Origin: Asterias rubens
Lineage: Eukaryota
Direction: 5' to 3'
NCBI RefSeq assembly: GCF_902459465.1
Contig: NC_047074.1
Span: 8,494,001 to 8,558,000 of the forward strand
Length of the DNA: 64,000 nt
This document shows, piece by piece, positions 16,661-64,000 of this stretch. The position numbers and the translations under genes were made by a program. Each line of letters starts with the position of its first letter. Position 1 is the stretch's first letter. The notes below the pieces were generated by a model, which searched no databases, was not told the DNA's origin, and worked only from the letters and a program-made list of their open reading frames with translations.

Positions 16661-17443
16661 TACATCTGATGAGGATAGGACGTTGAATATACAAATTTCT
16701 ATCTTAAGGTGGAATTCGAAATAATTATTTACTCATATCTGTAATGAGAATTTTAATCACCGGTTACAAGTATAGCCAGCATTTTGTTTGTTTTTTTGCC
16801 ATCATGCCACGCACTGGAATACCCAGTCTAGTCTCATGAAACTACATAGTAGATCTTTTGGAATAAAACAGAAAGTCTCACCAGTCCAGTTATTTTGGCT
16901 GAATTTCACAAAGCTGCTTAAGCTGAAAATACTTCTAAACAAAATTCTGCTGTGCATATTAAAGCAGAATACCACTCATCGATGGTACATGTGAAATGGA
17001 ATTTTGGTCGATGACTTTACTTCCATAAGGAAAATTTGGTTTTGCTTAGCTGTTTTGTGTGCTTAAAAGCTACTCTATGAATTTGGGATCAGTTAGCAAA
17101 CAAAATTTTATAAACTGGACTGCAAAGTTTTGCTAATCAAATGGGTTTGTGATGGTGGGAAAACAAAAACCTCACAAATCACACAAATCAGACAACCATT
17201 CAAGATTCATTGTTACGTAGTCGCACTGGTGTCCATGCAAATTTCTGCACAACAAGTACTCCTCAATGGGATTAATGTAGTAGGTTATCAAAACAAAATT
17301 TGGTCTCTAGTTTTATGACGGATCAAGAAGCAATAATGTTCACACATTTACAAAACTTTGAGATTGCTTGGAATTGTCGTTTGTGGAGACCATGACCAGA
17401 ACATCATAAGAGATTGAATAACAAAAACTTTCATTGGTCTTCT

Positions 17444-17821
17444 AGACAGTGGACACTATTGGTAATTTTCAAAGACCAGTCTTCTCATTTGGTGTATCTC
17501 AACATGTGCATAAAATAACAAACCTGTGAAAATTTGAGCTCAATTGGTCGTCGAAGTTGCGAGATATAAATTTAAAAAAACCACCCTTGTCACTCGAAGT
17601 TGTGTGCATTGAGATGGTTGATTTAGAGACCTCAAATTCTAAATCATGAGGTCTCGAAATCAAATTCGTGCAAAATTACTTCTTTCTCGAAAACTATGGC
17701 AATTCACAGGGAGCCGTTTCTCACAATGTTTTATACCATCAATATCTCCCCATTACTCATCACCAAGTAAGGTTTTATGCTAATAATTATTTTGAGTAAT
17801 TACCAATAGTGTCCACTGCTT
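17444..17821 (-). mobile_element. Kolobok-like MITE, family A
   Basis: agacagtggacactattggtaatt ... aattaccaatagtgtccactgctt-TTAA. Confidence 0.85.
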
Positions 17822-41086: not shown

Positions 41087-41477
41087 AGGCAGCGGACACT
41101 ATTGGTAAAATTACTCAAAATAATTATCATCATAAAACCTTTCTTTATTACGAGTAATGGGGAGAGGTTGATAGTACAAACCATTGTGAGAAACAGCTCC
41201 CTCTGAAGTGACGTAGTTTTCGAGAAAGAAGTAATTTTCCACGAATTTGATTTCGAGACCTCAAGTTAAGAATTTGAGGTCTCGAAATCAAGCATCAGAT
41301 CAGAAAACACATAACTTCGTATGACAAGGGTGTTTTTCTTTCATTATTATCTCGCAACTTCGACGACCGATAGAGCTCAAATTTTCACAGGTTTGTTATT
41401 TTATGCATATGTTGAGATAGGCCCTACACCAACTGTGAAGACTAGTCTTTGACAATTACCAATAGTGTCCACTGCCT
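41087..41477 (+). mobile_element. Kolobok-like MITE, family A (complete)
   Basis: TTAA-aggcagcggacactattggtaa ... ttaccaatagtgtccactgcct-TTAA. Confidence 0.85.
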
Positions 41478-41859
41478 TTAAAAGGGGATTTACACCAAGG
41501 CCAATAGGAGTTATCATAAAATAGGGTGATTGGCCCTCCTACCCTGGCGAAGAGCAAAGTGGAACCAGTTGGAACCAATGGAAACCGGATAGTGTATCCG
41601 GGTTTGCGTGCGTGTTTGTACTTTGAACGTCTGCTTAAAATTAAAGACGCCTCGCCCTGCAGTAGCTGAGATAATTTCGTTTTGAAAAGTGAGGGTGTGG
41701 TTAATAATAGATGACTTTAGTAGGCTTAGGAGGAATAAAGTTTTGTTTGTATGTATTTACAAACAAACCCAACAAGGATGTTTTTTTTGGGGGGTTATTT
41801 TAATGTTTTTTGTTTGTTATGCAAGTTCGCCCCAAACAAGGCTAAAAGCCATTCTATAG

Positions 41860-52814: not shown

Positions 52815-53191
52815 AGGCAGTGGACACTATTGGTAATTACTCAAAATAGTTATTGGCATAAAACCTTACTTGGTGACGAGTAATGGGGAGAGGTTGATAG
52901 TATAAAACATTGTGAGAAAAGGCTCCCTCTGAAGTGCCATAGTTTTTGAGAAAGAAGTAATTTTCCACGAATTTGATTTCGAGACCTCAGATTTAGAACT
53001 TGAGGTCTCGAAATCAACCATCTAAATGCACACAACTTCGTGTGACAAGGGTGTTTTTCTTTTGTTATTATCTCGCAAGTTCGATGACCGATTGAGCTCA
53101 AATTTTCACAGGTTTGTTATTTTATGCATATGTTGAGATACACCAAGTGAGAAGACTGGTCTTTGACATTTACCAATAGTGTCCACTGTCT
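52815..53191 (+). mobile_element. Kolobok-like MITE, family A (complete)
   Basis: TTAA-aggcagtggacactattggtaa ... taccaatagtgtccactgtct-TTAA. Confidence 0.87.
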
Positions 53192-53596
53192 TTAAAAGCA
53201 CAACAAAATAGCAGACTACGTTGGGGAGCCGATGGATATTCTCTGTATCCTCATCAGTTTATAGCAGCGAATCGCTAAAGCATAATTTTCTGCCGAAGCA
53301 GCTCCATATTGGGCCCTGATGATACTAAAAGTTCTTGAAACATTACATAATTGGTAAGAAAAACTCGCCCAGGATCACAGATTTGCATAAAACTTAGAGA
53401 TGATGACAGTTGAAAACACCCCTTGAAATGTTTTTGTCTGTAATGTTTTGGTAATGGATGAGAGAAAAAAAAAAAAAAAAAAAATCCCGTTTGTAGTTTA
53501 TCGCTTAATGATCGGTTTTTCCCTATTTTCTCGTGACCCAGATCGACCTCAGAAACTTCTAATTCTGGAATTGTTCCTATATAGGTCACAAAAACA

Positions 53597-56473
53597 ATGA
53601 AGTGCTGGAAGTGTGGCGTCCAGAAACTTTCGAAAGAGTTCCCGCCATGGACCATAATGGAGACGTGCCAACATGCGGCATTGCATTGCCTCAGGGTAAG
53701 ACATATATTATCATTCAGACTTTAAGTGAATGCTCAAACTAGGCACTGAACAATTACACAATTTTTTTTACTTGGTAACAAGCAATGGAGAGCTGTTGAT
53801 AGTATAAAACATTGTGAGAAACGGCTCCCTCAGCTCTGAAGTAATGTAGTTTTCATAAAAGAAGTAATTTTCAACGAATATGATTTCGAGACCTCAGAAT
53901 TAGATTGAGATCCCGAAATCAATCATCTAAAAGCACACAACTTCGTGTGACAAGGGTGTTTTTTTCTTCCATTATTATCTCGCAACTTCGACGACTAGTT
54001 GAGTTGAAATTTTAATTCTTTTTTTTTTGTGCATATGTTGAAATACACAAAGTGAGAGGACTGGACTTAGACGATTACCAATAGTGTCCAGTGTCTTGAA
54101 AGTTAACGAAATGTTGATAACAAACTAGCCCCAGCCCCCGATCATAAAGGTCTAACAGTTTCGTCTTTCAAATTCCTATCGATACACGAACAACTATCAA
54201 AACAATGTCCATATCCAAGAAACTTTGTAGCCCACTTTGCGCCGTCCATTTTTACCCGTCCATTTTCGGAGGGGACGCAATGGTTATAACTTCGCAACTT
54301 GATATTGCTGGCAAAATTGCTGGCAACTCAAATCCAAATCCAAATCAACTGAATCGCTGGCAATCTCCAATAATATACACTTTTCTTTTGCAGTAGGATA
54401 CGTTGTACACTTAAAAAAGAATTAATTAACCAAACAGTAACAGTCAGAATTTGGTAATGTGATATCTCCATAGAGATGGTCCAATTTTGACGGTGCCTTA
54501 AAGTCATGACACTTGGTATTTACTCAAAATAACTATTAGCATAAAACCTTACTTGGTAACAAGCAATGGAGAGCCGTTGATAGTATAAAACATTGCCAGA
54601 GAAACGGCAATAGAGTATGGAGGCATCATCTGGAAGCCGAGGCTTATGTAGGGATGCCTGGGGACAGACAATATACTGCCAAGAGAATTACCATACACAT
54701 ACAAAGGGAACAACCTTTCTCACTATGGTCACTATTAAAAGTGCTTCAAATGTCACTTGTCTTTTCTGCAATTATTTTTTACTAATACGGCTACCCACCA
54801 CACAAAATAATATACTAGAATTTATTATACGTTGTTATTTTCTTCTTCTCCAGTGCGTGACGGCTCATGTCGAGCAACACGGCAATTGCTCCCAATGTGA
54901 AAGTCCAGTTGGTCTCGATTCAATTCGTCTTAAACACTGCCACAGTATGCTGGACGCTATGTTTCCTGAGTACAAGATCACTTACGAGCCCACTTTGGAA
55001 GCGGACACGGCTGGTGAGAAAGGCTACATCAGTCTGGCAATGCTGAATGGTGACAGCACGAGTGTTGAGCTGAACGCGGCCATGACGGTCTTCAAGTTGA
55101 GAGGGATCGTCAAGAAAGAACTTGGAGTGCCATTTGAGAATCAACAACTGATTTACAATGGAACGGAAATGAAGGTGTGTTGAACTGTTTCGTATTTTAA
55201 AGAAGGCACTGGACACTAATTACTCAAAATAATTTTAAGCATAAAATCTTACTAAGTAACGAGCAATGGAGAGCTGTTGATAGTTAAAAACATTGTGAGA
55301 AACGACTCCCTCTGAAGTAACGAAGTTTTTGAGAAGGAAGTAATTTCTCAGTAAAATATTTGAATTGATTTCGAGACCTCACGCGTGAGGTCTCGAAATC
55401 AACCATCTGAAAGCACACAACTTCTTGTGACAAGGATGTTTTTTTCTTTCATTATTATCCATTGTTCAACAATTGGGTACAACTCAAGTTCACAAGTTGC
55501 GGTAACTGAGCAAAGTCTTGATGAAACAAAATTATTCATCCCTTCTCTACGGTGAATGCTTGCTATATATTTGCCCACAGGCATGAGTAACCTTGAAAAG
55601 GAAGATGGATTACTTAGAAATGGCTTCTAGGCGCTGGTCATGGGGCGAAGTTCAATCAGGGGTCAACCATAGAGCAGGGAAAAACACATGGTGCAACCAT
55701 AGGATAGTAGAAGTAGTAGAGCAAGAACCAATTTATTCTGTAGAAGTAACCGTAGAGCAAGGGCATAGATCTGTCCTTTGCAGGTTACGAAGTAACACAC
55801 CAACGACCAGTTTTGTATCATTACTTTACGCATATTATTTCCCCCCATTCCATCTTTAACACAGGAATATACAGAAGATCAAGCCACAACAAACCTCGGC
55901 TACTACAAAGTCCCCCCTTCAGCAACCATCTACGTCAGACGTCTTCTGTACGCAGTTCAAAACAGCAACTTAAAGAAGGTAGTCTTCGATCTCAACTGGG
56001 GCTATCCAGCAGGGGGAAAAGACTTTCTGGACGCAACTGCGATCATCTTCAGCGGTACCGAGTTGGTAGACTATCTGGATTACAGAAAACTATCCCATGA
56101 CTCAATGAGTCATTCCGGTGACGTCATGGACAACCACAGGAAAAAGGGGCACCATTTAATCACCGTCAATCTTCAGGAAGTTCCCGATGAGTTCACACAC
56201 ATCTTCTTCACATTGAGCTCGTATGAGTCACCCACCATCTCAAAGTTCCCAAACCCGAGTTTGAAGTTCTATGAGAAGGACCGGCCAGATGAGATGCTGT
56301 GTGAAGACACGGTGGAGAAAACCAATTTCTCGCAGGCGATCGTCATGTGCTGGATTTCCAGGGATAAGGGGAAGTGGTGTGTGTATAGTGCCGGGAAGGC
56401 GTCGGCAGGCAATTCGGAGGACTATGAGCCCCTTTATAAGACAATCTCGGACATTATTGCTAATGGACTGTAA
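53597..56473 (+). CDS. RING-ubiquitin-like-TerD fusion protein, paralog 1 (342 aa); exons 53597-53695, 54854-55174, 55865-56473
   Basis: Two phase-0 GT-AG introns. RING C-x2-C-x17-C-x-H-x4-C-x2-C-x10-C-x2-C. Ubl ISLAMLNGDSTSVEL...VPFENQQLIYNG. TerD-like FLDATA, HSGDVMD and ITVNLQEVPDEFTHIFFTLSSY. Confidence 0.85.
53731..54094 (+). mobile_element. Kolobok-like MITE, family A (degenerate), intronic
   Basis: Family A body ending accaatagtgtccagtgtct. Confidence 0.7.
55203..55480 (+). mobile_element. Kolobok-like MITE, family A (partial), about 30 nt after a donor site
   Basis: aggcactggacactaattactcaaaataatt followed by the family A body. Confidence 0.7.
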
Positions 56474-57184
56474 ATAGTAGGTGTGTGCATCTGAAACAAC
56501 AACAATTACAAAATATGCAGTAACTGATCAATTTATCTTTCTCTTTGATGGTATTGGTTTATTATCGTATTTTTTGAATAGGTGTAGGGTTCGCCAAAGG
56601 ACAACGGGTTGATCAAAAACGACTGCACTTGTGTACCATCTCGTGTTATCTTTTGGGGGTATTAGTTGTTTGAGTGGTGAATACGCACAAAATTTGATTA
56701 TAAAAAAGGTTAACGAATTCATGGACTCTAAAATTTAGTTTTGCTGCGGTCGTACTTCGAAAAGCAAACCAAGCCTGCTGAGATGATGAACAATTTTATA
56801 ATATGGAACTAGTTGAAGTAAATTTGTATTTATTTTATAAAATTTTACTTGATGTTTTTGGTTTATTTGTACTCTCTTAATGTAAAAGAGTGAAAAGGCA
56901 CTCTTTGAAGAGCCATAATGAAGGACAACTCTTTTTCGAGTGGTCTTCCACTCTTTTAGATTGACGTTTGCATCTTTTTGAGTGACTTTTCACTCTGTCC
57001 TGGAGTGAAACCCCTCTAAAAGAGTGAAATAACCACCACTCTTTTTTAAGAGCCATATGAGGGACAGCTCGAAATGTAAAGAGTGGTGTTTTTCACTCTT
57101 TTACATTTAGAGAGTAGCCTGTTGACACGATTTCAATAGATTTTAACAGACGATTATTTAAAGCAAAGCTTGATAACTTCTTAA

Positions 57185-57545
57185 AGGCACTGGACACTAT
57201 TGGTAATTACTCAAAATACATAGCTTAACATTTTCTTGGTAACGAGCACAGAGAGCTGATGTGGATAATGAAAACAGTGTGAGAAACGTCTCCCTCTGAA
57301 GTAACGTATTTTTTGGGAATGTAATTTCTCACTAAAACATTTGAATTTTATGAGAAAGACTTGACAGGCATGATGCCTTTCTCACACAAATTTGTACACC
57401 AATGATGTTTTTTCTTTCATGTTTTCTTGCAACTTCGATGACCAATTGAGCCCAAATGTTCACAGACTTGTTGTTTTACGCATTAATTGGGATACACTAC
57501 GTGTGGGATATACTACATAAGGAACACTGGTCTTCGGTTATTACC
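57185..57545 (+). mobile_element. Kolobok-like MITE, family A (degenerate)
   Basis: TTAA-aggcactggacactattggtaattactc at the left end. Confidence 0.7.
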
Positions 57546-58229
57546 AAACCTGGCCAGGGCTTAGCTGGCAAACCTGTAGAAGATTGAGACCAATCGGCCA
57601 TCTGGGTCACGAAAGATGTAGTGTCAAGCCGATTACACGTTTTTGCACGACATCGATTTCTCATCAAAAATGACATTAACATACAGAAATATTTCAAGGG
57701 ATGTTTTTTATCTATCGTCATCGTTAGACCGTGTAAGTTTTATGTAAATCTGTGATCTCATTTTTTTTCTAACAAGTTCGGTGACCGGTAGCAGTCTTGA
57801 CAAAACAAGTGACAGTGATTAGTTACCGGGATACTTGAAACACTTACAGGGGGTCGATTTCACAAAGAGTTAGGACTAGTCCTAGGAGATATACAAATTG
57901 CATGGATAGTCCTAAGTTTGGACGAGTAACTGGTCCTAACTCGAGATCTAGAGACTAGACTAGTCCTAACTCTTTGTGAAATCCACAGGTCCTTAAGTTT
58001 TATTTTACAAAGAACAAAAATATGTCCTTTTGATTTGATAGTGTAAATGTTCAACGTTCTGGCTGGGAACCATAGTCCGTTGAATAGAGGGAGCCGTTTC
58101 TCACAATGTTTTATACTTACCATAGCACCAGCTTTCCATTGCTCGAGCGTTACTAAGTAAGTTTTTGAGCTAACAATTACTTTGAGTCATTCACAATAGT
58201 GTCCAATGGTTTATTTTAACACAAATCTG

Positions 58230-58471
58230 GGGCCAATTTCATAGAGCTGCTTAAGCAAAAAAAATGCTTAAGCACGAAAATAGCTTGCTTATTTTACACA
58301 TGTTACTGGCAAAAATGTCATGCCATATACATTGCTTGTGATAGGTATTTAGTGGTTGTTTACTTAGCATAACAATTGAGTGGAGTCTTGGCCGGTAATC
58401 TGATTTTACTAAGCAAGGATTTTTTTGCTTAAGCAAAATTTTGCGCTTAAGCAGCTCTATGAAATTGGGCC
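58230..58471. mobile_element. Harbinger-like MITE (family H) with a CTG target-site duplication
   Basis: CTG-gggccaatttcatagagctgcttaagc ... gcttaagcagctctatgaaattgggcc-CTG. Confidence 0.8.
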
Positions 58472-58858
58472 CTGAGATTAATTCGAGTTAGTTCTTGCGA
58501 TTATTATGATGTTGAACAAAAAATGGATTATTGTCAACTTTATATTCATTTTTGTGAAATGTGACTCGTGAAATGCACATATAACTTTATGCTGGGAATA
58601 ATTAACCCCTTGATAGTTTCCAGTTGTTGTATGTAGAAATAGACTGAAATAAATTGAGTCAGGAATGCTATTGTGTATGATTGTTGTCCACTCGATTTAA
58701 TACGATTTCGTGTATAACTTTACAGGGCAAAACAGTATACCAAAATGAGTGTAAAGCAATCGGAACGTATTGAAGAATGCATGTTCAGCTTTGCAATGAT
58801 ATATACCATCTGGATTGAAAAAAAGTTTCCTTACTTTTTGTGAGCAGTTTAATTGAAA

Positions 58859-59807
58859 GGGACTTTCCCATTGTAGGCAATCATGACCTCAAACCCCTGT
58901 AGAAAATGGCTGAACAACACTTTAAAGGTGATCAATACAAACTGTAACAATGGATAATGCAAATAATGCTGTTACGTAGTGCTGCACCTGGCTCGTAGTA
59001 AAAGCATAGGGCATGATAAAGGAAAGTCCAAAAAGAGATGTAGGATTTTCTGTGGTTGGGGATAATCTTGAATTAGAAATAATGATAAGTGACAAAAACT
59101 TGCTATATTCGAACAATCAGGCCCTAGTAGTATGTGGTGTGGTCAACAAGGGATATTCCGGTTACCACTAATGGGACCTTGAGGTCCTATAGCGTCAGGA
59201 ATGTGTTTGGAGAATTTACAACTCAAAGAAAATGGGAGTGACATGTTAATTTACCATAGACCCTTTGTTGACATGTACACACGTACAAGACCTAACCTAC
59301 AGTACAATGTATTGAGGGTCTAAATATATTTTTACAATCTTCAATATAATTTCAATAAAATTCATAAGCCTAACTGTATCTGAAATTATGTGAAAACGGA
59401 TACCATGGCTATATCAATCTGTCAAAGAAAAAAACAAGTCAGTGGTTTTGCAGTAAAACTAAAATACCAGACAGGTTGACGACTGCGACAGCTAGACAGC
59501 TAGACAGCAAGTCAAAGGTCACAGCGACTGAATAGGCGTATAGCTGGCGTTTCCATGTAATGAAATGTACATGTACATACATTCACTCAAGGGGAAATAC
59601 CCACCGTGAGCAACACCATCAGTGCATACAGTGAGAAATAGCAGGTAGTTTGCATATTACCATTATTGAACCATTATTTGCATATGAATAAACATTGACG
59701 TACAAGTCTGTGTCCACGGAGAATGTCTAATGTCATATTAAGTTCAAATCTGATATGAGCAAGATTTGGGATTTCCCAGTCAAGTATTTCCAGTCCTGGG
59801 AAAAACC
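58859..59807 (+). promoter_or_regulatory. NF-kB/Rel-like sites upstream of RING-Ubl-TerD paralog 2
   Basis: GGGACTTTCC at 58859-58868, GGGGAAATACCC at 59591-59602, GGGATTTCCC at 59768-59777 and GGGAAAAACC at 59798-59807. Confidence 0.4.
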
Positions 59808-60079
59808 ACGGTTGCGAAATCACCATTGCAGTGTATGGACGGCCGCTTGTATCAAATCAGAGTGTCAACATGGCTGCCGACTAGGCATATTGGATATAAT
59901 GTACACACAAATACCTGTATGTACATAATGCACGAGGTTTGTAAGTCTGTAACCATTTATATTATAGCGTTGCTCCACGGACATTTTCTAAGTGAGAATA
60001 ACGGGATCGTGAGCTCAAGAACGTCTTGGACGAGGAAGAGTCGGGTTTTATCATCGAGGGATTCGTCGTTGATTTCACA

Positions 60080-63000
60080 ATGAAGTGTCGTAATTGTGGC
60101 GTTCAGAAACTGTCAAATGAGTTCCCGCCATGGACCATTATGGAAGAATGCAAACATGCCCCTCTCCATTGTCTTAGGGTAAGTGTGTATTAGGTGTCAC
60201 CTTGTTAATGTGATCATGAACATTTCAGCGCATTTTCTGAAGGACATTGACCATAGTTTATACCTCCATGGTTTAAGTTTAATTAATCAGTGTACAATTT
60301 TCTGTTCTCACGGTGGGTCACGCAGAAAGTGCATTAAGTTACGAAGTTTTCATCAAATAGTAACCTAGCTTTTCTGTATACAGGATGATATTTTATTGAG
60401 TTGTTGTAAAACATCAACATAACTTGGGTGGGGCTGAAATGTTCAGTCTACACTTCCTCCATGATCATTCTAATCAAAATAAATGAGATGACTCGATAAG
60501 AAGTGTCAAATGATTGATAAGATTTTAGAGTACTCATCACAATTTACGTGAGGGGCCAGGGGGCACTGGGTTTTCATGCTATGATGCAATATACCCGGTT
60601 TAGTAATATCAACGATGTAAACTACATTGTAATTAGAGATTGTCATGAAGGCTATAATGCTTTTGTTTTTTGTATATTTTTTATACTGCCTTTCTGGCAT
60701 GCGAGATACTACATTGCTCATGTGGGAATTATATACTTTATTATAATTGCCATAAATAATATATTTAAAGTTCAATCATTTTAACAGCTGAACATGTTGA
60801 GATATGCTCCCCTCTTCATATCAAAGTTGATAAACAAAAACAGACAGTACACTTTCAATCAATGCAATGTTGTGGTTTTTATTATGTGTTCTTCAATTGA
60901 GATGTAGTACCACGGGATTAAGACTCTGTGACTTTTTTTTTTTAAACATGCGAGGTCACATGCATGGTCTATTCTGTCCACATGGACGGGGTGGGGGCAT
61001 TCAGTGGTTTTAACCAGAGAATACCCCAACCCTGTTTAAAACACGGGGCAATAAACTGAGATCGTTGACCCGTGTTCCAAAAAGGATGTGGGCCAGAGGA
61101 ATGTTAACAGGTTGTTTTTTTTGTAAATGTCAATAGTATCCTCATCTCGTTTTCTTTGTTTTATCTTACTGAGCTTTTGAAGGGACACGTGAAAAAGAAG
61201 GGACGTACGTGAAAAAGAAGCCATATTTTCATGTAGATTCAAGGTTGTTAACTGATATAATTATCTGTTTCTCTAAACTTATCTCTACATCAAAGGGGTA
61301 ATTTCTCACAGTGTTTCATACTACAAACAGCAAATTGCCAAATAGGTTTTTGTGAAATTAGGCCTTTAACTTATTTAGTAATTACCAACAATATTTTATT
61401 TTTGGCCTAATTATTGTTCTTTCCAGTGCGTGGTTTCCCATGTGGAAGAACATGGCGAGTGTTCCCAGTGTGATGGCGAAGTGGGTCCAGATTCCATCCG
61501 TCTCAAGCGATGCCACAGCCAGCTTGAAGCCATGTTTCCAGAGTGCAAGCTGAACTACGTCCCCAAGGCGGAAGGAGCACCTACGCCCAGTGGGAAGGGC
61601 TTCATCAGCCTGGCCATGCTGAATGGTGACAGTGCAAGTGTACAGCTGAACTCGGCCATGACGGTGTCAACATTGAAAGCATACGTGAAAAGTAAACTTC
61701 AAGTTCCACTGGAGAATCAACAGCTCATTTATAATGGGACTGAAATTAAGGTAGGTACAATTTGTACATGGAAGAGCAAAACTGTGTGGTCATATGCAAA
61801 TTAATGCACTGTTGTTATAGGCCTGTGTTGAACTAAAGAGAAGAAACGTCAAATTTGAGTAGAAAGTTGATTGGCACCTGGCCCATCTTTTTACAAGTGA
61901 CTATAAAAGTATTATTTATCCGCAGATAAGATTATCTTCCATTAAGTTATATAATGTGTGAAATATTGGTGTCAAATAATTGTGAACAATTTTGTCATTA
62001 TTAACTATTCGGCGATTTCTTTTCATGAGTTAACCAGGTGGTTCGAAACACATTAATGTTGTGATTGTGATATGATTTAAGTTGAATGTGCACATGTTTG
62101 TTTGGGTAAGTGTTCTGTTAAAGGCAGTGAACACTATTGGTGATTACTCAAATTAATTATCGGCATAAAACCTCATTTGGTAACGAGTTATGGGGAGAGG
62201 TTGATCGTATAAAACATTGTAAAACTCCCTCTGAAGTGACGTAGTTGGGTCTCGAAATCTAAGCATCTGAAAGCACACAACTTTGTGTGATAAGGTTATT
62301 TTTTTCTTTCATTATTATCTACCAACTTTGACGACCAACTGAGCTCAAATTTCCACAGGTTTCTTATTTTATGCATATGTTGAGACACACCAAGTGAGAA
62401 GACTGGTCTTTGACAACCACCAATAGTGTCCACTGTCTTTACCATATACATGTATTTTTAAAGTTTAGTAATTTGAATTTTGTATCTGTTTACATGGACA
62501 GGAGGTTACTGATACGAAAGCTACAGCAACACTGGGATATTATCAAGTTCAGCCGAATTCTACCATCCACGTGAGAAGACTCCTCTACTCGGCACCTAAA
62601 GACCTTGATAAAGTGGTTTTTGACCTTAACTGGGGTTATCCATATCATGGGCGTGATTATTTAGATGCAAGTGTTCTAATTTTTGAAGGGATCAAATATG
62701 TTGGCGTTCTTGACTATAACCACACCAGTTTCCCACCAGCCATGCAACATTCTGGAGATCTAATGGATGATTTCAACTGCACAGGTCACCATTTGATCAA
62801 TGTAGATCTCCATAAAATTCCCGCAAATATCACCCATTTCTTCTTCACTCTGAGTGCTTGGAACTCCCCCACTGTGTCCAGTTACCCAAACCCCAGCCTA
62901 CGGTTTTACAAACAGTCTGAGCCGGGCAAGATGCTGTGCGAGGACACTATAACCAAACTGAATTACTCTCAGGCCATCGTAATGGCGTGGATGACCAGAC

Positions 63001-63110
63001 AAGGCGGCCACTGGTGTGTCTTTAGCGCTGGGAAGCCTTCAGCCGGTAACGCGAAAAACTATAGTTGCCTGGTGTCGACAATACAAGGCATTATTTCTAA
63101 TGGACTGTAA
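60080..63110 (+). CDS. RING-ubiquitin-like-TerD fusion protein, paralog 2 (343 aa); exons 60080-60178, 61427-61750, 62502-63110
   Basis: Same three-exon structure and phases as paralog 1. MKCRNCGVQKLSNEFPPWTIMEECKHAPLHCLRCVVSH...CSQC; Ubl ISLAMLNGD...VPLENQQLIYNG; TerD-like YLDASV, HSGDLMDD and GHHLINVDLHKIP. Confidence 0.87.
62122..62438 (+). mobile_element. Kolobok-like MITE, family A, intronic
   Basis: TTAA-aggcagtgaacactattgg ... ccaatagtgtccactgtct. Confidence 0.8.
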
Positions 63111-64000
63111 ACCGTGTAAAATAAATAAACAATGGATAGTCATACATTCCCACCCCAAACATATTGTCTGTTAACCTGATAAACCATGGGGCAATTAATC
63201 GTTCTCCTCTTGATCCCCTCTTTCTGTTGGTCAAACTATAGACCAGACCTCCTTCTGTTATATAGACTCCCTGATTTCAAACTGTAGATATAAAACAAAA
63301 CAAAGGTGTATATAAAGATTATAAATTGTACTGTATGCAGAGATCATTGCCATTTTATTGGTGGAACACTTGTTGTTTGAACATGCGTCGGCCGCGATGC
63401 TCCAAATTTTATCTTGAGTCCTATATTGATAATTAAAGGACGATTGGTAGAGCCATAACCAAAAACATCTCTCTTCTGCTTGTTTGTCCAAACGAGGCAC
63501 GGGTCGTATCACGGTAGACAAGGTTGGTGTGTATTTGGAGTCGTCCATTTTGTTTCGAATGGTTTTTGTTGTTTAATCTTCAAATCTTCAGACTTGTGAT
63601 TTGGAAGAGATTCCCTTTCTATGTTGTACTTATTTGTTGTACTTAAAATAAAAATGGGAAGATCTTATATGTATGATTTATGTAAAACAAATATTGAAAG
63701 TATATAAAAGAATTTGTAATTCATAACAATTGAAAGTATTTCGTTCGTGCGTTGTCACAGAATATTTAAACCCCTTTGCGAAGTCTGTTCACTGTATGGG
63801 CTCGCCCCTTTGGAATCGATTAATTTAATAGTCTATTTTACCTCGCGATTGCATTAGGCAGAAGTGCATTCATGCATGCAATAATTAATTTGTTAAATAG
63901 TAATACCATAAAGTAAATTCAAAGTATGTTTCATTATTTACAAGGTTGGGGCATTCATTGCTTATCATTGCTACCAATCTAAGAGTGCACTGAGCCGTTT

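Follow-up and report, generated by a model that had tools for sequence, protein, structure and literature searches.

RING, ubiquitin-like and TerD domains fused in a tandem pair of sea-star genes belonging to an old and widespread eukaryotic family

Introduction

In bacteria, TerD is a common domain of stress and phage resistance, and there it makes up single-domain or TerD-only proteins encoded within ter operons. In the stretch of Asterias rubens DNA considered here (64,000 nucleotides, positions 8,494,001 to 8,558,000 of the forward strand of contig NC_047074.1, assembly GCF_902459465.1; hereafter, the window), TerD is instead the tail of a larger protein: two tandem genes, indicated below as copy 1 and copy 2, each encode a RING-type zinc domain, a ubiquitin-like domain and a TerD domain, in this order. 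The C-terminal 170 residues share fold and sequence family with bacterial TerD, TerZ and TerE, with Gsp16U and SCP2 of Bacillus, and with CABP1/2 of Dictyostelium, and they keep the LDAS and HSGD motifs. A tblastn comparison of the TerD part with plasmids returned ordinary terZ and terD genes only, with 29% identity to plasmid TerZ.

As for the union of a RING with a sensor, RING ligases switched by small molecules are both valuable and uncommon, the textbook example being RNF146, which is also the best-known one of allosteric switching of a RING by a small molecule. RNF146 combines a RING with a WWE domain and is activated by iso-ADP-ribose; like the sea-star proteins, it is small and carries, in addition to the RING, a domain for ligand binding at its C-terminus, and the RING-WWE structure 4qpl is among the neighbors of the RING model described below. 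However, its WWE sensor is unrelated to TerD and it has no ubiquitin-like domain; apart from the RING, the likeness is one of logic only. Parkin, and other E3 ubiquitin ligases endowed with a ubiquitin-like domain, also hold this domain and RING-type zinc domains in one chain, and that of Parkin regulates its ligase; in the sea-star family, instead, the order is reversed, with the RING first, and there is no IBR, no RING2 and no catalytic Cys module. Parkin models were recovered as weak multidomain matches, driven by the ubiquitin-like domain.

Gene models

The two gene models were rebuilt by reading the regions 53400-56700 and 59900-63300 by hand, followed by scripted splicing (Table 1). Copy 1 (53597-56473) encodes 342 amino acids and copy 2 (60080-63110) encodes 343; both are on the + strand, both have three exons, and the four introns are all of the GT..AG type and in phase 0, which agrees with the two intact paralogs of common structure reported in a preliminary description of this DNA, made from the letters alone. 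The spliced product of copy 1 equals the A. rubens RefSeq protein XP_033638196.1, named "uncharacterized protein LOC117298923", at every residue; hence, the three exons are joined in the same way in an independent NCBI/RefSeq gene model, including the junction between exon 1 and exon 2.

The placement of the domains on the exons is also as first described. The RING is divided between exons 1 and 2, with five zinc ligands in the former and three in the latter; in copy 1 the ubiquitin-like domain (residues ∼88-168) crosses the junction of exons 2 and 3 at K140/E141, and TerD is confined to exon 3. Exon 1 had been reported as missing from the track of open reading frames (ORFs), and this is consistent with its length, because as an ORF it spans 42 amino acids in copy 1 and 55 in copy 2, under the default minimum of 60. 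A tblastn search with both proteins against the whole window, which has a G+C content of ∼39% and zero N, found the six known exons only and no third copy. Taken by itself, the pair is an already annotated and ordinary ortholog pair, and the result for the window is a modest one.

Table 1. Positions in the window of the exons of the two genes and of the dispersed repeat
Feature	Position	Strand	Residues	Content and evidence
Copy 1, exon 1	53597..53695	+	1-33	First five RING ligands (C3, C6, C24, H26, C31) and motif KLSxEFP; ATG at 53597, GT donor after codon 33; same as the XP_033638196.1 N-terminus; 100% identity to the A. amurensis exon
Copy 1, exon 2	54854..55174	+	34-140	Last three RING ligands (C34, C45, C48), helix and linker, first half of the ubiquitin-like domain; AG acceptor, GT donor, phase 0; Pfam ubiquitin on exon aa 60-107, E 6.4e-5; 97.5% identity to the A. 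amurensis exon
Copy 1, exon 3	55865..56473	+	141-342 + stop	End of the ubiquitin-like domain, whole TerD; Pfam TerD 39.4 bits (cut-off 25.3); fold matches 3ibz, 2kxt, 2qz7
Copy 2, exon 1	60080..60178	+	1-33	First five RING ligands; structured as in copy 1; 99% identity to the second A. amurensis gene
Copy 2, exon 2	61427..61750	+	34-141	Remainder of the RING, linker, first half of the ubiquitin-like domain; phase-0 junctions; Pfam ubiquitin 29.4 bits (cut-off 25.4)
Copy 2, exon 3	62502..63110	+	142-343 + stop	End of the ubiquitin-like domain and TerD; Pfam TerD 27.3 bits (cut-off 25.3); dN/dS of the TerD part vs A. amurensis 0.11
Dispersed repeat, ∼340 bp	53760-54110, 52866-53196, 55249-55459, 62250-62439, 4076-4409, 17440-17770, 41150-41482, others			SINE- or MITE-like

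Domain architecture

Regarding the N-terminal domain, the eight zinc ligands listed in Table 1 follow the C3HC4 order, with the spacing C-x2-C-x(13-18)-C-x(1-2)-H-x4-C-x2-C-x(6-20)-C-x(2-4)-C, and each of them is kept in 43-44 of the 44 family members. The first zinc loop carries the KLSxEFP motif, which is family-specific and nearly invariant. A profile of 40 members, compared with the sequences of the PDB, matched the RING of RNF4 (E 1.3e-7), RING1B/BMI1 (9.7e-6) and BRCA1 (2.9e-4), followed by RNF8, COP1 and RAD18; taken one at a time, 11 of the 40 members matched Pfam zf-RING_2 (best E 5.9e-6) and five matched zf-C3HC4 (best E 1e-5). P0007, a Logan transcript contig, was left out of the RING analysis because a spurious GTG start replaces its exon 1. 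A first AlphaFold2 model, built on the Asterias amurensis ortholog (98% identical) with an alignment of seq­uences from seven members, had a predicted local distance difference test (pLDDT) score below 50 at the N-terminus; the model of residues 1-75 alone, obtained with 40 sequences, reached 94. The RING-type zinc module of the preliminary description is supported by the conserved ligands and by the family profile, and residues 1-70 can be accepted, at the level of the family, as a probable RING-type domain of the C3HC4 class, in which two extra residues lie between the His and ligand five.

The second domain had been called ubiquitin-like, and both Pfam and the fold agree: the Pfam ubiquitin model scored up to 41.8 bits in the orthologs, and this part of the model matched NEDD8, ubiquitin and ISG15 in Foldseek, with template modeling (TM) scores, normalized by target, of 0.8-0.86. 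The surface of the Gln41/Leu43/Ile44/Gly47 type is retained, with Q130 found in 40 of the 44 sequences and L132 in 43. The domain is internal and has no C-terminal Gly-Gly, and its last strand, VRRLLY, continues straight into TerD; it is an integral β-grasp domain (residues ∼88-168) that is not conjugatable, and not a modifier.

The C-terminal ∼170 residues (∼170-342) are a TerD β-sandwich, as proposed at the outset. Both copies score above the gathering cut-off of the Pfam model PF02342 (Table 1), and a profile of this domain from 40 sequences matched TerD proteins of solved structure, 3ibz with E 3e-13 and 2kxt with E 1.8e-12. In the A. amurensis model, pLDDT is 80-94 over the last 250 residues, TerD included; its best Foldseek matches in the PDB are the TerD structures 3ibz, 2kxt, 2qz7 and 2qng (TM by target 0.74-0.77), and those among the Swiss-Prot models are TerZ, Gsp16U, SCP2, TerD/TerE and CABP1/2 of Dictyostelium.

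The metal site of this domain differs from that of the bacterial protein. Klebsiella TerD has two calcium sites, Ca1 with residues 40, 41, 42, 78, 79 and 89, and Ca2 with residues 29, 82, 84 and 88 (PMC8779313, quoting Pan et al. 2011). These ligand numbers were transferred to the family with a HMMER alignment to 2kxt and with column counts over 44 sequences. The acidic GDGDDE calcium loop of the bacterial proteins turned out to be replaced: Asp40 is deleted and has no counterpart, Asp42 corresponds to D196 (kept in 42 of 44 sequences) and Asp78 to D226 (34 of 44), while the position of Asp88 is taken by H236 or is variable (23 of 44), and that of Glu89 by H237 (His in 36 sequences, Gln in seven). 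H223, of the HSGD motif, is invariant, and H237 is next to it. By this mapping, the calcium sites of the Klebsiella type are not retained as such; since the TerD family is accepted to include paralogs that bind metal and paralogs that do not, the remodeling likely changes the ligand and not the membership. The resulting Asp/Asp/His/His pocket suggests that a transition metal, or another small ligand, would be favored over calcium. TerD has also been treated as a possible binder of specialized nucleotide derivatives (PMC7159879).

Selection on the two copies

Copy 1 and copy 2 have 62% protein identity, and a matching tandem pair (342 amino acids, then 343) exists in A. amurensis on a chromosome of 21.9 Mb. 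Between the two species the exons are 97.5-100% identical, with the exception of exon 3 of copy 2 (92.8%), and introns and flanks are mostly 84-95% identical. The comparison of the two paralogs with each other gave a rate of synonymous substitution (dS) saturated at 2.75 and a rate of nonsynonymous substitution (dN) of 0.29; because of this saturation, dN/dS between the paralogs is uninformative, and the comparison with the orthologs was taken instead. With the Nei-Gojobori method, dN/dS against A. amurensis was 0.19 (copy 1) and 0.12 (copy 2), with every domain below 0.35. The dN/dS check proposed in the preliminary description was therefore of no use between the paralogs and informative between the orthologs, and the values indicate that both copies are under purifying selection.

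Noncoding similarity between the paralogs is limited to pieces of a ∼340-bp dispersed repeat, placed in introns that do not correspond. The earlier statement that motifs are conserved, introns diverged and both copies selected holds on these grounds, given the 62% protein identity, introns that share repeat pieces alone, and the low dN/dS of the orthologs.

The TerD exon of copy 2, compared with its counterpart in the A. amurensis locus piece (L001:20088-20696), has a dS of 0.27, against 0.05 for the same exon of copy 1, while its dN/dS is still low (Table 1). This high dS could be due to a mutation rate that differs locally, or to gene conversion in the past.

Taxonomic distribution and age

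An exhaustive profile search over 1.84 billion cluster representatives (clusters at 50% identity) found 266 proteins with E <1e-30, and dozens of clusters matched from residue 1 to the end. Taxon names were recovered for a sample of the matches, and they cover distant groups. Among echinoderms, the family occurs in the sea stars Asterias, Acanthaster and Patiria, in the brittle star Amphiura and in the crinoid Anneissia; among chordates, in amphioxus and lamprey; among bivalves, in Crassostrea, Ruditapes, Pinctada, Mercenaria, Mactra, Potamilus and Sinanodonta; among cnidarians, in octocorals and in one stony coral. Fungal members come from the glomeromycetes Rhizophagus, Gigaspora and Dentiscutata, and those of protists from the choanoflagellate Salpingoeca, the Amoebozoa Planoprotostelium and Mastigella, Naegleria, the centrohelid Pterocystis, and Picozoa. 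The database labels of the named members are all "uncharacterized", "hypothetical" or an automatic domain label. As a consequence, the concern that the architecture might be already well characterized and widespread was right about its spread, across eukaryotes, and wrong about its characterization, as the labels are uninformative and no paper was found. The remark that TerD is foreign to the standard vertebrate repertoire is beside the point, the host being a sea star, and lamprey has the gene too.

A maximum-likelihood tree of 25 members follows roughly the species tree: animals are together, with echinoderms, cnidarians and bivalves grouped within them, and glomeromycetes are apart. The sea-star duplication falls after the split from brittle stars and before that of Asterias, Acanthaster and Patiria; copy 1 groups with LOC110980997 and LOC119723498 (support 100/99) and copy 2, more weakly, with LOC110980998 (84/90). 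Further copies were seen in two genera: in Patiria, a third one (LOC119723497) adjoins LOC119723498, and Amphiura filiformis has at least three, on different chromosomes. As for the introns, amphioxus, oyster and octocoral all have intron 1 at the identical codon, after zinc ligand five and before ligand six, and an intron of their ubiquitin-like domain also has approximately the position seen in the sea star.

The history of the family is one of vertical inheritance with many losses, and a recent import of TerD from bacteria is rejected by the topology close to that of the species and by the intron 1 common to coral, oyster and amphioxus. RING-Ubl-TerD (Ubl, ubiquitin-like) is an old, widespread and unstudied eukaryotic family that is not confined to sea stars. 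The usual model animals seem to lack it, a possible reason for the absence of studies.

TerD in other fusions

In bacteria, a RING and a TerD-like stretch also appear to share one protein in the MXAN_6230/SCO0854 RING family (NCBIfam NF041916, Pfam Prok-RING_4): positions ∼547-619 of the 842 of this model match the start of the TerD domain in seven of 40 members of the eukaryotic family (best E 5.1e-6), and actinobacterial proteins of 722-729 amino acids superpose on residues 13/30-342 of the AlphaFold2 model with a TM of ∼0.53. However, the bacterial proteins are far longer and the scores are far under the cut-off (25 vs 600 bits); a common descent of the pairing is only a lead.

Fungi provide a second and independent eukaryotic fusion of TerD to parts of the ubiquitin system, made of an E2 ubiquitin-conjugating domain (UQ_con), an F-box and TerD (an Atlas cluster of 51, Ascomycota; AFDB A0A507FQ17); in this case the partners are E2 and F-box, not RING and ubiquitin-like, and the proteins have ∼930-980 amino acids, with 981 in an AFDB model. 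Other eukaryotic architectures include C2 with TerD in diatoms, EF-hand with TerD (P0157, 877 aa) and BRCT with TerD; TerD is far commoner in eukaryotes than CABP1 of Dictyostelium alone suggests.

In the unionid mussels Potamilus streckersoni (P0018, 592 aa) and Sinanodonta woodiana (P0206, 594 aa), a Pfam VWA domain precedes the RING-Ubl-TerD unit. In bacterial ter clusters, TerD is accompanied by the vWA proteins TerY and TerF.

Proposed function and alternatives

The window encodes two selectively maintained paralogs of the expressed type, each with RING, ubiquitin-like and TerD domains. Judging from the sequence, each protein may well be a RING ubiquitin ligase gated by a small ligand or by a metal, a reading that is proposed tentatively, as the likeliest of those considered. 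The functional idea of the preliminary description, an E3-like protein with a possible role in stress or immunity, is likewise plausible as a hypothesis, and the fungal E2-F-box-TerD proteins are an independent link of TerD to the ubiquitin system. The TerD domain would bind an ion or a small molecule, possibly derived from a nucleotide; its occupancy would alter the way in which the RING engages E2~ubiquitin or the substrate, in the manner of RNF146, and the ubiquitin-like domain would act either as an internal regulator, as in Parkin, or as a handle for ubiquitin receptors.

Several observations weigh against a gated ligase, and most of them concern the RING. The sea-star proteins alone, either as single exons or at full length, have no match to the Pfam RING models; four residues separate the His from the Cys that follows it, two above the aligned RINGs; and the structural neighbors of the model of residues 1-75, nearly all RING or U-box, have weak scores (Foldseek E ∼0.1, TM 0.46-0.59, Z up to 4.4), as is usual for zinc domains of 50 residues. 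In addition, the hydrophobic residue, typically Ile, that contacts E2 before the second Cys is absent, position 5 being K, N, S or G; the Pro after the seventh ligand is Ser in the copies of sea stars, brittle stars and corals; and none of the positions after the last Cys holds a conserved Arg/Lys linchpin in the 44 sequences. Several RINGs with such deficits are inactive alone. On the side of the sensor, we know of no established ligand of TerD domains, even in bacteria. As for the novelty of the architecture, full-text searches of the literature found no paper or functional study on RING-Ubl-TerD or on its locus names, and a prior listing in the 2012 Ter survey of Anantharaman, Iyer and Aravind is possible; PMC3417536 does not mention Ter. 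The family amounts to RING proteins whose sensor domain is unusual.

Because of the deficits at the E2-contact residue, the Pro and the linchpin, a serious rival to the gated ligase is a RING that is not catalytic and serves as a zinc module for dimerization or partner binding, as in BMI1, BARD1 and MDMX; the protein would then work as an adaptor or a sensor, either together with a different, active ligase or with no ligase at all, and the real work would be done by the TerD and ubiquitin-like unit. This possibility, somewhat unlikely in our estimate, agrees with the presence of the partner-type BMI1, PCGF5 and MDM2/MDMX among the best profile and fold matches, and the KLSxEFP loop could be a docking site and not an E2 surface. 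However, the top profile matches also include the active RNF4, RNF8, RAD18 and COP1, the eight ligands and the central helix have been retained over >1 billion years of divergence, and Cys-Pro at the seventh ligand is kept in 28 of the 44 members. An improbable alternative is that of a shuttle or substrate-type protein, in which the ubiquitin-like domain would bring TerD and its bound ligand to ubiquitin receptors or to the proteasome, and the role of the zinc domain would be structural only. The residues of the Ile44-type patch are indeed retained, and an independent Atlas model, from a related cluster, can be superposed on the ubiquitin-like and TerD domains taken together as a single unit (256 residues, 1.8 Å); weak matches of the Rad23 type were also found on the ubiquitin-like part of 15 of 40 members (best E 2.9e-6, far under the model cut-off), but they span the generic ubiquitin-like fold only, no UBA or other shuttle domain was found with Pfam, and the strict conservation of the N-terminal RING would be left unexplained.

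A recent bacterial transfer, a contaminant, or a prediction artefact in which exon 1 is not joined to exon 2, is hardly credible. It could be thought of because TerD is mostly bacterial and because exon 1 is short and set off by an intron of 1.2 kb; yet the genes have spliceosomal introns and a host-like base composition, the set of zinc ligands is complete only after exons 1 and 2 are joined, and full-length protist homologs, N-terminus included, occur as unbroken ORFs in transcriptome assemblies. The tandem pair on the 21.9-Mb chromosome of A. amurensis, the tree, with its separate groups of animals, echinoderms, cnidarians, bivalves and glomeromycetes, and the intron 1 codon common to coral, oyster and amphioxus refute it for practical purposes.

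Returning to the gated ligase, a broader and more doubtful proposal is that RING-Ubl-TerD represents an ancient class of such enzymes, possibly as old as the last eukaryotic common ancestor, in which the His-bearing TerD pocket would sense either a transition metal or a signal derived from a nucleotide, with ubiquitination as the output. Eukaryotes would have connected TerD to the ubiquitin system at least twice, as RING-Ubl-TerD and as E2-F-box-TerD, and the RING-TerD pairing may descend from bacterial proteins such as those of the MXAN_6230/SCO0854 family. If this were true, the family would be a surviving piece of a prokaryotic stress or defense pathway of the Ter type, set in the eukaryotic ubiquitin system, and model organisms, jawed vertebrates and insects among them, would have lost it since. 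Being compact (∼340 amino acids), soluble-looking and deeply conserved, the family is a tractable handle on what TerD domains sense, and on whether eukaryotes retained a Ter-type signal that feeds ubiquitination.

Surroundings of the gene pair

In the A. amurensis locus (L001:3645-5381 and L001:23781-23853 for the neighbors), the pair is preceded upstream by a gene for a Myb_DNA-bind_5 protein of 292 amino acids, and a protein of 4899 amino acids with faint AAA hits starts ∼3 kb downstream; the A. rubens window ends 890 bp past copy 2, and the corresponding position is outside its view. As for the ∼340-bp dispersed repeat, which resembles a short interspersed nuclear element (SINE) or a miniature inverted-repeat transposable element (MITE), it has 19 matches in the window with 68-83% identity (Table 1), some of them upstream of copy 1 and within introns of the two genes.

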